NCBI RefSeq assembly: GCF_037042905.1
Contig: NC_087256.1
Coordinates: 1,364,001-1,428,000 of the forward strand
Source of the DNA: Lytechinus pictus
Lineage: Eukaryota
Reading direction: 5' to 3'
DNA length: 64,000 nucleotides
The notes under the pieces were generated by a model. It was given only the letters and a program-made list of their open reading frames with translations, was not told the DNA's origin and made no database searches. Position numbers and translations under genes: made by a program. Shown piece by piece: positions 12,907-21,900 of this stretch (the first letter of the stretch is position 1; every line of letters begins with the position of its first letter).

Positions 12907-15900
12907 CTGTAACAGATAGGTCAACAGAGTAATAAAAATAATTTGCTTTTATATCGCGCCTGGTTGAATTCCTTCAAAATATTCCTTCACAGGATTTGAT
13001 TGGAGATGGTGGTGGTAGAGGTTACCTTAAGTTACAGAATACAATCATCACAAAAAGAACTTTGTCTAAAAATAAGGTTTTTAGGCTTTTAAGGTATTGG
13101 CTAGCTTTGCAAACAGCGGATTTAAAAAAAATTCTCAAGCCAAGATGAAACATGTGTATGAGTACATATATCAGAACTAAATAAACCCCTTGAAAACAAC
13201 CATTATTGAGAATGAAAAGCTATCAGTACAATGGAAACCACAATTTCATAATTTCGCTTCCTCAAGTCGTATTTTGTGTTTATGATGAAAATAAGATGGT
13301 GTTTCTGATCACTATATTTTTCACTTTTTGAAGCACTAAATAATGATTTCTTGACGCATTTTTTTCCCGGATTAATTTTTATTTCATATCACAGACACAT
13401 GTGAAAAGTGGGACCTTTTTTAAAGTCGATGTTAGCCTATGTCTTTAATAAATCATTACTCACCTAAGAGGTAAAAATCTTGTTCTATATAATATTGCAC
13501 CTAAAGTCCACTGGACCTCTTTGTCATGTATAAGGCTGGCAGAACGTAAATAATGATAATCTTTGGGGAATTCAAATCCTTTATGAAGTACTGTTGTTAT
13601 CCATGCTGATTTAAAACATTGGTATCTGTCAAAATAAAAGCATATATATATAAAGACATTTTAAATAAACATCATAGCACAATTTATTTAGCTATCATAA
13701 AAAAAATCTGAACAGATTAAAAAAAATTAAACTAAATGAATGACAGTTCTTTATATATAATTCAATTCAAAGCTGGTCACTACATCTATCATTCACATGG
13801 AAGTCAATCATATGTTAACAATGAACTCGGTAATAAAAGAAAGGGACAAACTTGCTTTTCATTTTTAAAAGTGGAGAATCAATATGAAACAAGTACATAA
13901 TTTAGCTTATTTTACCTTTCCTGATGCTTTGTGTGTTTGTATTCCTTATAATTTGTATAATCAATCAATACTGAAAAATAAAAAACAAGGGTCCTAAATG
14001 CGAAAAAACATGTGAACTGCAAAATCTATGTATAATATATCACTGTTTCCTATAAGTGAGTATCAAACTTTTCTTGACATGGGAGCAACAATATTAATCA
14101 GTAACAGGATATAAAAGAAAATTCTCACTTACTTTAATCTATGCTCATCTGCTTTACTATAAAGACCTTTTTGATGATGCTCTTGTAATAATGTCCATTT
14201 TGTGGCACAAAATTTCTGCACAATAACAAATAGAAAAAAAAATTAAGCATGAACATTGATATATATATATCTATCTATCTATTCATGATCGAATGACAGG
14301 GTATTCCTTCCACTGTGAGTTGAAGTCATCCAGGAAACTACTGGGTAAAATGTTACTGAAGGAGTATATCAAGGGTAATGCCAAGGTGATTCTAGGGTGA
14401 AAATCTGATCACTTGGATCAGGAGTAGTTGGAACAACTTGATAGATGATGATACCCTTTTTTTTTTTACCTGGGGGCAGTTTCATAAAGACATTCGTACC
14501 TTACAAATTACTTTACAAATGACTGGGGATCCTTTCTTGTGCTAAATGATGTATCCCTGTGTAGCTGACTTGGCACCTGAAACATGTTCCAGTCTTGATT
14601 GCAAAGAAAGCATGAATGCTTGTAAGCAAGCAACCAGAGGACCTAAGGCACAAGGTCCTCTCAGAGTGACCTGGAAGTAAGGAAAATGCCTTACCAGAGG
14701 GGACTAGCTCAACAAGTAGGAATCAAGCCCAGTTAACTAGATTGCAAAAACAATCGATTTACCATCTGAGCTATCACCCTCCCCCCCTCTAACGCATGCA
14801 CATAGCAGAACTAATAAAGCCAAACAAGTGTCTCACAAAAATTATGTGGCATATCTACAGCTGTCAAATTCATAGATGAATGCATCAACCCTCTTGATTC
14901 ATCTAATGACACTGCAATATTTAACATAACCCTTTCAATTTTTTTAAAGATTCCTATAAAAATATTACATAAAAAACTAATTGTATGCTTCCTATCAATA
15001 CAAACTTACTTTTGCTGCAATTTCAAACTGGTCGTACTCATAGACCCCTCCCATCCTCAGTACATCCTCCATACAGTACCAGTATTCTGAAAACCCGTAG
15101 AACTCTGAGTTGTCAAAATTAATTTCAGCTTGATACACCCCTCCAAGGGAACATGGTTCCTTCTGACATGGCTTGTTAGATCCTAGGACTGGGATCATGG
15201 ATTCTTTACAAGCAAGGTAATCTCCTGTTCCTTTAAAGTGATAGGTCTTCCCTCCTTTGATGATCTGATCTGTCATTGAGGTTGGTAGACAGGGATCCAG
15301 GAAGGGAGAGGTCGGACTGAGACCTATCACAGATTTACTGAAATGAAAAAAAGTTTGATATCAGTTGGCATTACTCCATTCATGATCGTCATCCAATATC
15401 ATCATCACTGTCCAGACCGTCCGATCTATCACACTGGAAAATTTGCTAAAAATGAGGAATAAACATGCAGTTCCCATAGGAATGTGCAGTAAAAAATATT
15501 CATTCACATCTGAAAATCATATAATATGGGATCATAATAATAAAATATTTAAGAATGCTTGAAAGGTCTGGCTATTATCATTTCACTTTATTCTGGAATC
15601 ATTTGATTGATGTACTGTATCTTGTTTGTTATAGAGACGTGAAATAAAAAAATTTCTTTCTTTTTTTTTTTTCATTCAGAGATAACAAGGTCAAAGATGC
15701 ATTCAATTTTAGGCAGGTCACCATGACTGGCCATTGAAATTGATAGACACTGTAGACTATGTATGGTGATGGGCTGTATTGTGTGTTTGATAAAGAGATG
15801 AGGGTAGCAAGAGACTCCGGTGACTCATGCCTAATGCAAATTTGTAAGCATTCTCTCCTGTTTAAAATTTCTACACATAACGCCTGCCCCATGTCTAGTA

Positions 15901-18900
15901 AAATATACGACCATGACACATTAAGTGACATTGATACTCACCTATCATCTTTATTGCTTAGAGTTGAATTGACGAGTATAGTTTCATATCTTGACCTAGC
16001 AGCATTGCCTCCGTAGCCTAAGAAGGTTGTTACATAGACCCTATAGACATGATCTGATTCGTGCTGGTCACATCCTAGATTGAATTCCGCCATCAAATCC
16101 TTCGCTGCTGCCTCCTACAATGACAACAAATGATGACTTTGTTAATTACAGAGAAACTTGGACCATTTAAGGAAGACTAGAAAAAATTCACTATACTACT
16201 GTAGTTTACACAATTCAGTGGAAGATATTAAATTCTGTCTTTTTTTCTCCAGTGGAAATGGGGTGAGGGGGACAGGGGGTTATAATTAACTGAGAAAAAA
16301 TACTGAATGATGTACCTTGGAAATATTTCAAAAAATAATTTTCAGTGATTTTTATCAACATATGTTGATTGACTGAGAAAAATACTGAATAGAATACCTC
16401 TGAAATATGTCAAGAAATATTTTCACTGATTTTCATCAACACCTGTTGAAAGCTACTGTATACTGTACTTGTATCTGACTAAATGAGAGCAAATGTCTTA
16501 TACCCTTGCAATTTCTAAGTGCATTTAGTATTGTATGTGAACTCTCATGATTTTTTTTTAGTTTCACAGTTATTTATGATAATATGAATGTCAAGTTGGT
16601 CTGAAGATATCACTATCAGAGTTGCAAAGGTAGATTCACTCAAAGACACAAATAATACAAATATGTGTCATGGAAAATGCCACTAGTATGATCAAAGAAA
16701 AATAGAGAGAGAGTCAAGGACAAATGTTCACTATGATCAGAGATTCAAATCATTATTATTTGAACAACCCCTTGTATCTCATATATGATTCCCTGTGTGT
16801 TGATGTAAAAGCACTATTCTCTACAATGTAGTCTGATATTTCTCACAGAAGAATTGAAGTGTGTAATGTTCTTCATACTTGACTCACTCAGTATAACAGA
16901 GATTAAACACACAGTGAGTATGCATGAAAGCCCCAACGCTCAATTTCTCTGAAAAATATTGTGGTACAAAGATTACAAAAATAAGTAACTTACTGTTTTT
17001 TGTTGTGAGATTGTGTGCAATCAGTGAGTTCTGAGATAATTCATATCCAAGGTTATATCATGTTCTGGAACACTGGTTCAAGCAAATGTAATTGTGTGGT
17101 CATGGAAAATCATGTGTGTGTCAACTATTTGTATTTAATTGCATTTTAATAAGAAAAGAACTGTGAAAATACAGCTAGTGATGTGCACTGGTGTGAAATT
17201 AATACTGCAGTGATAATGTAAAGCAAATGTTTTGAAATGAAACATGTAGTTGGAGCACAATATTAATATTTTTGAAAAGAATCAATTGCCTAGTTAAGAT
17301 GCAATGTATGTTCTAGATTAACATGAAATTATTAAACAGCAAAATGATATTTGGAGATTCATTTCACAGGATTTTAGTGCATTTCCAACAAACTGAAAAA
17401 TATAATCACTATATATGAGTAAAGTTAACTGGAAATGTCTCTTCAATGATTTAATACATAATACAAGGCTATAAATCAATTTTGCAAAGCTCCGATAAAA
17501 ATGAGAATTTTTAAGAAGGGGATTCAGGGGGCTGTTTCATAAAGCTGTTCATAAGTTAAGAGCGACTTTAAGAACGATTGGTGATCCTTTCTTGTGGAAA
17601 ATGGTATCAAGCAAAATGTTCATTGGAAAAATTAGCATGTAAAATAGGTTCACCAGTCATTCTTCAAGTCGCTCTTAACTTACAAACAGCTTTATGAAAC
17701 GGCCCCCAGGTTAGTTTAAATCTAATAATGAAAAGTGAAGATCTTTGGCAGATAATTGGTTATGTTCATTCCAAAATCTTGAAAAACTATCCATTTTAAG
17801 GGATAATTCTGAAAATCTGTAAAATGAGAGACAGTTCAGACGATGGCCAACTGAATGCGAATCTATCCAAATGTTTTTTTAATAGACTTATGTATTGTAA
17901 AATGAAAGCCTTTACAATGAATTACCTTAAAGCAAAGAAAAATATTATTTAGCACTCAGAAATGGCCTCCTCTATCATCCCCGCCCCCAAAAAAGGTATA
18001 TATAAAAAAGTTTTATTTTCCTCAAAATAGGTAATATTCTTAGAGACTATCACAAGCATAAAACCAAATATATTTTAGGTAGTGAAAATATAGTGTCCGT
18101 TTAGAGAGTGAGAGTAGGCATGACAAATAAAGGGTACATATCCAATGTGGCATGTATAGGGTATTGTGCGTTATTGGGTGTTCAAGTATATTCAAATATG
18201 GACAATGACAGGCATAAACCAAAATTGGAAAGCAAGGAACAATAACAATGCAAGCTACAATGACAAATCACAGATATTACCACAATATGGGCATACATAC
18301 AGTACAAGATTATTCAAGTATATATTTGCTAATTTTATTTCTTTAATTTGCTCCAAACTTAAACTAAGAATGATGCTATTAAGGAAAAGCTTGACTCCTG
18401 GATTTTTTTTTACTATTTCTATTTCTATCAACCCTATTTGAACTAAGATGGAGGATGAAGGCCCGGGACTCTGGAAGCCCCATCTCTACCATCCCTCAAT
18501 ATAATAAGCATAACGTTTTAATCTTGAGAAACTCTGGCAGCAACATTTTAGACATTGAAATCAGCATTTGAAATTTTGCTTTTATATTAGATTTCTCAAA
18601 GCTTTCACAATATTCACTAGGACTACTGCAGTAGACACAAACTGCAAAGCAAATCCAGCAAATTAAACAAAATATCTGACATAGATAATTAGCCAATTCC
18701 CAAGCAAATTTCAATTCTGAATTAATATTTTAGATACTCTATCATTAGGATATGGTTTTTGCAAATTAAATTAAAGCTGCAACTTTTCAATAACAACTTT
18801 CTTTCACTAAAAAACATAAATCAGAAATGAAAAAGGAGGCTAGATGAGCTGATGTGAAGACATTTTTTTTAAGAGAGGAGCCAAGCTGTGGGATGTTTTT

Positions 18901-21900
18901 AGTGCAAATGATAAACACCTGTGGGTTATTGAGATTGAAGCTTACAGACTGGGGGACTTCATAGGCAATCTGAGCTGATCCTCCACCCATATCAAGTACT
19001 CCTACAGTCCTCTTCCTGGAGACAGTCTGAGGAGATGCCTCAGCTCCTGGTAGCTCCACCTTCACTACAGGCTCATCTGAAAGAGAACACATCATAAAGA
19101 AGAATACAACAGATTAACAATTTTTTGCTGTACAATTTTCAAACATAAACTTAAATGGATATTGCCAGATATGTTAAGAAAGGTTTCGTTCATGATGTGC
19201 CATCAAATCTATAGTTTGACTATTGCTATAAGTGCCTTTGAAGTGAATACACAAATGAAGTATACACAATTATTCAATTAAATTTCAATTTATTTATTCA
19301 ACCATCATCAGGTACAAACAATTGCAAAAATACATACCAATATTGATTTTGCTTTTATTTTTAGCATCTACACATTTGACCCCCTCCCCATTGCGTTGTG
19401 AAATCAAGATTAATTTTGTAAAAGCAGAGTTATAATATAAAATGCATAAGTGTCTCACCATTATTGCTGTGATCAAATCGTCCCAATACATAGTTGATAC
19501 CAATCCAAGCATAGACACCCTCTTGCTTCCCACTGATCACTTCTACATTCTTCTCAGGGAATAGGAAACCATAGTCCAAAGGAATGTCTCTCTTAAGGTC
19601 ATCTAGAATTGCCTGAGATTGACTATGAATACAGAGATATAAACAGATCGGGATCATTAAAAACACTATTTCCAACATATCATTGTTCTTTGATATTAGA
19701 ATATACACCGTGATAATGTCCCTCATTTTATCTAGGATTGTCAAGTATATCCTCATACGTACATTCAATACTGGAATTCTCCTACTATAGTTTTATCCAC
19801 CTCTAGTGTGCCAGCATGTAAAAATTTATATCACATAATATGCCAATTCTCATTTAGCTGCCACTACTCATCATAAACCTTGCGGAAACAAAAGGAAATC
19901 CATGAGAAAGGGCACAATTTTACGAAAGTGCATCAACAGATTCATGCAGTGAAACATGTCTATACAGACTACCAAAGGAAGACTAGAAAATTGGTCTTCA
20001 TGAGCAGGTGAATTTTATGGACAAGTTCTTATAATAAATATTTCAATGGGAAATAGTATTTTGTAGTCCTACGAGACAGGTATTGCCAAATCGGTGACAC
20101 AACATTTGCTCCTGCGACATTTACTCCAGTCTTAATATCTCAGAGGGCATAGGTTTAGAGTTAAGATTGCAATAGAGTTTTAGTTTCAGAATGATGTAAA
20201 GATAAGGATTAGGGTTTATTTAGTTTTGGAGGTTAGATTCAATGTTTGGCTTAACATGGGAGATTTTCCTAAAAAGCAATCATCACCAGAGCAAATGTCA
20301 CGGAACTGCCAAATCAAGTTTAACTGTACTAATTAGCTGAGACCTACCTTTCAGGTAACATACGCATACCAGCAGTGGCAAGGATGTAGAGAGGTGTCTC
20401 TGGTATCTTAGATTCTGGAATGTGATTAACTGCAAAGTCTAGTAATGGTTTCATATATGTACTTGCTTCTGATGGGGTGCTGGCAAGTCCTGCCAAACCT
20501 TTAATAGGATACAAGGGAAAAATAATGAATTAAATCATATTCAATGAAATGAAGCGATAAATGGATTACACACATTACTTCTAAGAATAAGCAAATAATG
20601 ACATGACCTTTTTGTGCTAATATCAAAACATTTTCCCTTTCTCTAACAAATTTAAATATGTAGTGTAGATACTGTACATGTTTGTGAAGACGAATGGCAT
20701 GTTGACAAAGGAATAATAGAATCTGATACCTTACTTTTTACTACCTCATTGTAAATAGATGACTAGTTATTTTTTTATGATCTGGTTTTCTTTTTACCTG
20801 TTATGAATATGTTTTTCAATATTTCTTTCTCAAATGGATAACATTCTCATTGTCTGTTTCTATCAATATTTTATTCACATGATTAATACTTGTTTTGAGT
20901 CTTCTTTTCAGCACATATGGGATATTTGAAACAATATTTCTTTTGCACAGCACTTACCTGGTTTAATTTTCTTGACCACTGGCTGTCTATTGGCATCTCT
21001 CATCTGGTGTATTTGGAGCAGTTCATTATTCTTTCCAGTGTGACTGGGCCAGAAGTAGACAAAAACCCTAGTCCCACTGGAACCAGCATCAACCACAACG
21101 CCATAGTAGAGATTTGGATCTCCTATATTGGTGGCCTCTACGTGTTGGTACCTCTGCACATAGTTATCATAGTCTCTGTCCCCACTAGTGGACGGGCCAT
21201 AGGAGCCAGTCTCATAGACATAGATACAAATGATGAGGAGAGCTGTGATTACAAGGGCACTGCAAGCCGTCTGCCTCCGTAGATGGGTCATTCGAAAACT
21301 GATGTGCCAGAAAGCAGGAAGAGGTACAAATGGACACCTGCATAAAAAGAAGATATCAGAAGATATATATGTCATTATGACCTTAATAAGATTACAAACC
21401 ATGTAGGATAAGTTGCAGAGTTTTGGCACTGTAAGTCTACCCTTCCTAGAGTACTGTGAGTGTCATCAGCAATGCCAAGCTAACCCTGTAACCGATTCTC
21501 GGATCGGCGGCCGATCTCGATCTAATCAATGCTGATCGATCGTTTCATGCCGATCACCGATCATAGCAAATTTATCGTTATGATCGGTTGCGAAATTCCC
21601 CGCACCGCGCCGGGCCAAAGTTGGCTGCGCTAGCCGGCCGTAGCTGCTGTGCGCTCGCTGTGTTAGCTCTTGGTCGGCTGCCGTGCTGCAAGCCGATATG
21701 ACTGCAACAGTGAAATTGATGTTTTGATGTCCTTAGATGTCCTTAACTGAGGTCATCATTGCTCCGGGGTTACCACAAATTAAGATTAAAAAATACCTGT
21801 TGCCATGCAGAAAACCGCAGATTAATTGGAGTCGCGTGCCCCACAATCATTCCATATTCCTCTTAAAGAAAAAGATTTACAGTTCACTTTTTTCTGCCCA

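Follow-up and report, generated by a model that had tools for sequence, protein, structure and literature searches.

Tandem in-frame 5′ splice sites in an ENTPD4-like gene of Lytechinus pictus and their probable homology with the human LALP70/LALP70v switch

An ENTPD4-like gene with two donors for one acceptor

The DNA analysed here, referred to as the window, is a stretch of 64,000 nucleotides (nt) from the sea urchin Lytechinus pictus (contig NC_087256.1, positions 1,364,001 to 1,428,000). Its minus strand carries an ENTPD4-like (NTPDase4) gene in which one exon can end at either of two GT donors, 27 nt apart, that compete for the acceptor at 16114 (Table 1). ENTPD4 is a Golgi/lysosomal nucleotidase, and a comparable switch in the human gene, LALP70/LALP70v (NTPDase4 alpha/beta), has been known since 2000. 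To judge by the titles of the human studies, the splice variants reportedly differ enzymatically and the motif VSFASSQQ is said to confer calcium sensitivity. We consider it probable, at roughly 0.85, that the L. pictus gene contains a genuine alternative 5′ splice site that is homologous to the human switch.

The apyrase conserved regions sit in minus-strand open stretches of the window. When the nine-exon model is translated with either donor it equals the RefSeq L. pictus ENTPD4-like isoforms exactly from residue 3 on, the long isoform X1 (XP_054766326) having 623 amino acids (aa) and the short isoform X2 (XP_054766327) 614 aa. Four of the joints in the model are supported by spliced contigs. 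RefSeq residues 1-2 (Met-Ala) are not encoded adjacent to 21345, and a very small first coding exon, like that of most orthologs, must on this evidence lie upstream in the part of the window above 21345. The Pfam family GDA1_CD39 (PF01150) matches the long form with 396.8 bits and the short form with 404.9 bits (cut-off 24.9; E=1e-118), whilst the closest solved structure is that of NTPDase4 (PDB 6wg5, E=1.8e-195), followed by NTPDase1 (7e-38) and NTPDase2 (1e-29). Judged by these matches, the gene is an ENTPD4 ortholog in the ENTPD4/7 subfamily of the GDA1/CD39 family. A transmembrane helix is found at each end of the protein, where AlphaFold predicts long helices (residues 21-47 and 562-585 of the long form) outside the catalytic domain.

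Directly after apyrase conserved region 4 (ACR4), the minus strand, followed from GGA GGA TCA onwards, reads GTC CCC CAG TCT/GTA AGC TTC at the upstream donor (D1) and AAC CCA CAG/GTG TTT ATC at the downstream donor (D2), where slashes mark the cuts; with the first cut the exon ends at 18946, with the second at 18919. The 27 nt between the donors are stop-free and in frame and encode VSFNLNNPQ. Past the acceptor the exon reads EAAAKDLMAEFNLG, this start being given a second time as EAAAKDLMAEFNLGCDQHESDHVYRVYVTTFLGYGGNAAR. A sequence-only reading of the window had called both donors, the peptide and the acceptor, and every one of these coordinates, as well as the peptide, is correct on the minus strand. 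It had also equated the site with the position at which the human-type protein reads QIAYEVPKT-VSFASSQQ. This is borne out by vertebrate ENTPD4 gene calls, which read EVPKT VSFASSQQ V with a GT past the eighth codon, and by the 6wg5 chain (vertebrate NTPDase4), to which HMMER aligns the urchin peptide (vsfnlnnpq to vsfa-ssqq) within a 500-residue alignment. The urchin and human switches thus share the enzyme family, the site directly after ACR4 (EVPxx/), the V-S-F start, two in-frame donors and the downstream sequence E-x-x-AK-x-L-AEFNLGC. The likeness claimed for the two peptides holds for position, start and frame but not for length, which is 9 aa in the urchin and 8 in vertebrates.

The bare pattern of two neighbouring GTs lies within chance expectation, an in-frame, stop-free GT being found no more than 45 nt downstream at 2 of the 8 donors of the L. 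pictus gene. We take the site as real because of the RNA evidence and the conservation described below, not because of this pattern. No stretch of N is involved at the locus.

Table 1. Features of the ENTPD4-like gene and its splice switch in the window (D1 and D2, upstream and downstream donor)
Feature	Positions	Strand	Basis
ENTPD4-like (NTPDase4) gene, coding exon 2 to stop codon	12642..21345	-	joined exons equal RefSeq X1/X2 from residue 3; Pfam; PDB
Coding exons, nine-exon model	21345-20958, 20498-20348, 19622-19459, 19076-18946 or 18919, 16114-15942, 15337-15010, 14215-14133, 13625-13464, 12906-12642	-	
Constitutive part of ACR4 exon (DEPVV...DMGGGSAQIAYEVPQS)	18946..19076	-	sequence; contig pieces 18945/18956-19076
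D1, TCT/GTAAGC, giving the short isoform (614 aa)	18940..18945	-	contig 6 of run X3 joins 16114; GTAAG invariant
Optional 27 nt, VSFNLNNPQ, long isoform only (623 aa)	18919..18945	-	sequence; isoform pair; aligns to VSFASSQQ of 6wg5
D2, CAG/GTGTTT, giving the long isoform	18913..18918	-	run X1 contig joint 16114 to 18919, GT..AG ends
Switch intron, 2804 nt in the long form; 2831 nt (to 18945) in the short form	16115..18918	-	contig joints; gene model; donor-acceptor joining
Next exon (EAAAKDLMAEFNLGC...), shared acceptor ttgtag/GAG	15942..16114	-	sequence; contigs; donor-acceptor joining

AlphaFold places the optional residues of the long form, 279-287, in a confident loop with a predicted local distance difference test score of about 89-90. 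On one side of the loop is strand 268-274, the hairpin of ACR4 that binds phosphate having this as its second strand, and on the other a short helix, 286-292, which leads into the AEFNL strand. The model of the short form keeps the fold with a shorter helix, and its local confidence is lower, at 83, 77 and 69 for the three blocks; the alignments behind the two models differ, which makes the comparison indicative only.

Both forms in RNA

The contigs of four runs with only exonic words of the stretch were compared over 14900-20600. They skip introns 15338-15941, 19077-19458 and 19623-20347 with GT..AG ends, and are therefore derived from spliced RNA. The long form appears in run X1 (source species), where a contig of depth 40.8 joins 16114 to 18919 with 37 letters on its shorter side, the flanking contigs of that run having depths of 62-71. 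The short form appears in another sample of the source species, run X3, whose contig 6 (1594 nt) passes directly from 18946 to 16114. The distal donor is thus in use. For Strongylocentrotus purpuratus, two Logan transcript proteins are available, one of 628 aa with VSFNLASPQ and one of 619 aa without it (P0248, P0249).

It might be argued that the two forms stem from different alleles, from paralogs or from contig mis-assembly, and not from one pre-mRNA. A polymorphism does segregate in the runs: at 18955, ten bases before D1, the plus strand carries G or T (GTC>GTA, Val, synonymous), with T in part of the source-species contigs and in all contigs under a second organism label, and the short-form contig of run X3 has the T allele. 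Both forms are nevertheless colinear with one locus and exactly identical in all other exons, both donors lie on the single haplotype of the window, and the pair recurs in the annotation of 14 species, so that an origin of this kind is scarcely credible.

Two contigs under the second organism label continue past D1 and D2 into intron sequence (window 18472-19076). Record 21 of run X6 is spliced at the two upstream introns but still contains the switch intron, and record 14 of run X5 is also unspliced over 18472-19076; these contigs show that the switch intron is retained or removed slowly. If it were read in frame, the protein would end some 40 codons past the optional peptide. The same intron contains a high-copy transcribed repeat at 17525-17711, and a second such stretch lies in another intron at 20093-20187. 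Both are covered by hundreds of contigs in all four RNA-like runs, with summed depths of thousands to tens of thousands and with many loose ends and internal joints, and both are probably transposon-derived.

Isoform pairs and donor sequences in other animals

A search with the exon returned many short ‘proteins’ that are gene calls crossing the exon boundary into intron sequence. When a full-length cephalopod relative served as query, named orthologs from many phyla were obtained; cluster look-ups then gave isoform pairs, which were aligned pairwise. Pairs that differ solely by a peptide directly after EVPxx are present in RefSeq for three sea urchins, four sea stars, one crinoid, two acorn worms, amphioxus, a brachiopod and a chiton. 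This makes 14 species with L. pictus, the 13 others belonging to the echinoderms, hemichordates, cephalochordates, Brachiopoda and Polyplacophora (Table 2). In a third acorn worm, Saccoglossus, records of 610 and 601 aa differ by a peptide at the same position, and fish, frog and bird records include a short ENTPD4 (EVPKT/EEVAK...) beside long forms.

Table 2. Optional peptides and switch donors by species or genus
Animal	D1	D2	Optional peptide
L. pictus (window)	TCT/GTAAGC	CAG/GTGTTT	VSFNLNNPQ
L. variegatus			VSFNLNNPQ
S. purpuratus	TCT/GTAAGC	CAG/GTGTTT	VSFNLASPQ
Asterias (peptide: A. rubens and A. amurensis)	ACC/GTAAGC	GAG/GTTATT	VSFNKPGPE
Patiria			VSFDGSDPQ
Acanthaster			VSFDQSGPQ
Antedon	ATT/GTAAGA	AAG/GTGTTT	VRFDPSNVK
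Glandiceps			VRFKSHDKQ
Ptychodera	TCT/GTAAGA	CAG/GTGTTT	VRFNLYNKQ
Saccoglossus			VRFNSYDKQ
Branchiostoma (peptide: B. floridae and B. lanceolatum)	AGT/GTAAGA	AAG/GTGTCG	VRIDK
Carassius ENTPD4 (fish)	ACT/GTAAGC	CAG/GTTATT	
Lingula (brachiopod)	TCT/GTAAGA	AAG/GTTATT	VRFDSPK
Liolophura (chiton)	ACT/GTAAGA	AAG/GTTATT	VRYETTK

The genomic loci of ten orthologs were compared, with gene models made by chaining of high-scoring segment pairs and refinement of the junctions, and the switch donors were tabulated for nine loci from five phyla, including the window and, for the vertebrates, a fish locus. At the eight loci with annotated pairs, D1 or D2 together with one shared acceptor rebuilds both proteins. 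The fish ENTPD4 locus has the same architecture as the urchin gene, although its D2 hexamer is GTTATT where the urchin has GTGTTT. The same intron start in S. purpuratus, Asterias and Antedon among other echinoderms, in the hemichordate Ptychodera and in amphioxus, groups to which the sequence-only reading had pointed, likewise has the GTAAG donor and an open stretch behind it.

GTAAG stands at D1 in all 9 loci; every other invariant string of bases in the region can be accounted for by amino acids that do not vary. In the same genes only 5-30% of Val codons are GTA, and AGN accounts for 33-78% among Ser or Arg codons. The joint probability of GTAAG at all nine loci given the amino acids is about 4e-11, a figure in the style of an upper bound, the species being non-independent and representing at least seven deep lineages. 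The second residue of the optional peptide alternates between Ser (AGC) and Arg (AGA), as would be expected if it is the GTAAG bases, not the amino acids, that are constrained. The caveat entered beforehand, that the ‘VS’ start of the urchin peptide is forced by the donor, was therefore not only right but informative. The comparison shows selection on the donor itself (GTAAG) beyond that on the peptide. At 15, 21, 24 or 27 nt, the length of the optional stretch is divisible by three in every case, and no stop codon interrupts it.

The two donors are of opposite types, D1 following the consensus on the intron side only (GUAAG) and D2 on the exon side only (AG/GU), and this pairing is kept in all switch species examined. 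AG occupies positions -2/-1 at D2 in 9 of 9 loci and at D1 in none, compared with 70% of 57 other donors of the same genes; G is found at +5 in no D2 (0 of 9) and, with GTAAG, in all nine D1 sites, against 67% of those 57 donors. The description of D1 as strong and D2 as weak, with which the site had been introduced, is too simple, since the strength of each donor is confined to one side of its cut, the other side being weak. For the 5′ splice site, two main classes have been defined, right-handed or U6-type (//GURAG) and left-handed or U5-type (AG//GU) (PMC9803359, PMC11732430, PMC11842720), and they match dependence on LUC7L/L2 versus LUC7L3 (PMC11842720). D1 (GUAAG, no AG before the cut) and D2 (AG/GU, no G at +5) fit the published right-handed and left-handed classes exactly, a resemblance in sequence only. 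By analogy, the ENTPD4 switch might respond to LUC7 proteins or to N6-methyladenosine (m6A) in U6. ENTPD4 is not mentioned in PMC11842720. Our literature search found no paper linking ENTPD4 to invertebrate splicing.

Other candidate signals around the donors gave little. An RNA hairpin that masks one donor is not supported, the 106 nt around both donors folding no better than shuffled sequence (z = +0.69). A U-rich stretch follows D2 in all species, but such stretches are common in introns generally. Extra constraint on the intron past D2 was not found in a comparison of L. pictus with S. purpuratus, its first 100 nt being identical at 71/96 positions and other introns at 60/76 and 62/77.

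These data bear on the suggestion that the second junction is splicing noise, a low-level by-product of closely spaced GTs that has no function and is annotated wherever RNA sequencing is deep. Tandem donors a few codons apart often do yield minor isoforms, and the contigs supply no quantitative ratio. Noise would not, however, lead one to expect that GTAAG is retained against codon usage at nine loci, that frame and openness are retained at four different lengths, or that D2 keeps its unusual AG/GU without a G at +5 in all nine. Nor is the long junction a trace product in L. pictus, given its depth relative to the flanking contigs, and the human motif is reported, again by title, to alter enzyme properties. 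We regard noise as a very improbable account of the switch.

Origin and age of the switch

In the anemone Nematostella there is a single phase-0 donor, GGG/GTGAGT, at the exact position of D1, with an in-frame stop four codons on; its mature protein is as long as the short form, and coral gene-call fragments behave alike. These observations and the higher Pfam score of the short form indicate that the short form is the older one and that the long form arose by exonisation of the intron start. In the scheme that we envisage, the ancestor would have made the short form with D1 as its single donor, like Nematostella, and an ancestor of the bilaterians would have begun to use a second donor a few codons into the intron, possibly aided by the U-rich stretch after D2. 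The insert may change the calcium sensitivity and substrate preference of the urchin enzyme as reported for human VSFASSQQ, the human enzyme being the only one for which these effects are reported.

Two lineages carry the homologous peptide at the same site without a switch. In the sea cucumber Apostichopus (L011) ATT GAA replaces GTA AGN and the peptide IEFTNK is constitutive, whilst vertebrate ENTPD7 (LALP1; e.g. P0067, P0197) has ATC/ATT ACN at D1 and a constitutive ITFSSPQE. Unlike in urchin ENTPD4, the upstream donor is destroyed in both. From the sequences, these are two switches that appear to have been frozen independently in the long state through loss of the upstream donor.

The main alternative to an ancestral switch is that only the intron position is ancient, and that several lineages each acquired the downstream donor on their own, the likeness to the human gene then being a product of parallel evolution. 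Several observations are in line with such convergence. For any intron with a GTAAG start, extension to an in-frame GT close by is possible, and such GTs without an intervening stop are common, as noted for the L. pictus gene itself. The optional peptides vary from 5 to 9 aa among phyla, and their Val-Ser/Arg start is dictated by the donor. The switch is also absent or unannotated in conchiferan molluscs, nemerteans and arthropods. Other features are hard to reconcile with repeated recruitment. Among the 14 distinct optional peptides of species with annotated pairs, 13 have an aromatic third residue (amphioxus has Ile), and ‘VRFD’ is common to Lingula, Antedon and Capitella. D2 reads AG/GTTATTAT in fish, brachiopod and chiton and AG/GTGTTTA in urchins, crinoid and acorn worm. 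Within the deuterostomes the distribution is nearly continuous. Finally, the lineages without D1, ENTPD7 and the sea cucumber, retain the peptide as constitutive exon sequence, and the peptide therefore predates the losses of D1. On balance we think convergence unlikely.

Homology with the human switch, which we favour, has its own weak points. The pairs from other phyla are automatic RefSeq models, with RNA support inspected for S. purpuratus only (Logan), and in L. pictus the support consists of assembled contigs, with one listed contig per form, which give no isoform ratios, tissue regulation or strandedness. Part of the likeness between peptides is forced, an intron start of GTAAG always reading Val-Ser/Arg. 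No pair is annotated at this position in gastropods, bivalves, cephalopods (octopus) or two nemerteans, an absence of annotation that is no proof of absence, and the sampled arthropod proteins, two of which came from a 69-residue query of the Lingula region (10 candidates), have long, unrelated linkers and no annotated pair at the switch position. With the switch unannotated in these molluscs, nemerteans and arthropods, a single bilaterian origin needs several losses.

The sequence-only reading had proposed that the switch may predate the split between vertebrates and invertebrate deuterostomes. The isoform pairs support this and reach deeper, into Lingula and Liolophura, and an open, in-frame stretch between the donors has proved to be conserved. 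An origin before the echinoderm/chordate split is very likely. As Lingula and Liolophura are annotated with the same donor sequences, the origin probably also predates the protostome-deuterostome split, which we hold with less assurance. A more ambitious proposal, that the switch was inherited from the protostome-deuterostome ancestor and kept for more than half a billion years as a pair of opposite classes, GUAAG against AG/GU without a G at +5, is tentative and, in our estimation, rather doubtful. If it were true, the choice of splice-site class by the spliceosome (through LUC7 paralogs and U6 m6A) would be an ancient, selected input that sets the calcium sensitivity of a Golgi/lysosomal nucleotidase, and ENTPD4 would be a natural reporter of class choice, comparable across phyla.

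For genome annotation the finding is an ordinary one: RefSeq already lists both L. pictus isoforms, automatically annotated, and the human switch is already known. What appears to be undescribed is the conservation of the switch across phyla, the constraint on GTAAG at the DNA level and the design with donors of opposite class. To our knowledge it is uncommon for an alternative splicing event to be shared between animal phyla, and alternative 5′ splice sites are shared less often than cassette exons; here the two-donor design, the frame and a similar peptide recur in animals ranging from chiton and brachiopod to fish, as well as in the human switch of the literature. The calcium-sensitivity switch of human LALP70 thus probably dates far back in the enzyme family and is no mammalian peculiarity. 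ENTPD4 also offers a clean natural case of competition between donors of the two recently defined classes, and sea-urchin embryos, in which splice-blocking oligonucleotides are in routine use, provide a system for testing the switch.

Isoforms in the nemerteans and octopus vary at other places (Lineus P0280/P0178, Tubulanus P0295 and isoforms, Octopus P0289/P0290). One of these places immediately follows GRFxHE(E)G, where the junction matches 19459/19076 of the window, and the other, a cassette of 23-24 aa, precedes RYQCFKSAW; both may be additional points of variation in the family. In a sea-star-like contig (GCA_014845345.1, JACSEG010018931.1; L001:151-552), which is 87-93% identical to the Asterias rubens locus, the switch intron is precisely absent, the ACR4 exon including VSFNKPGPE being fused to the next exon with the flanking introns present. 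This looks like intron loss by way of a long-form mRNA, though it could be a partial retrocopy or an assembly artefact.

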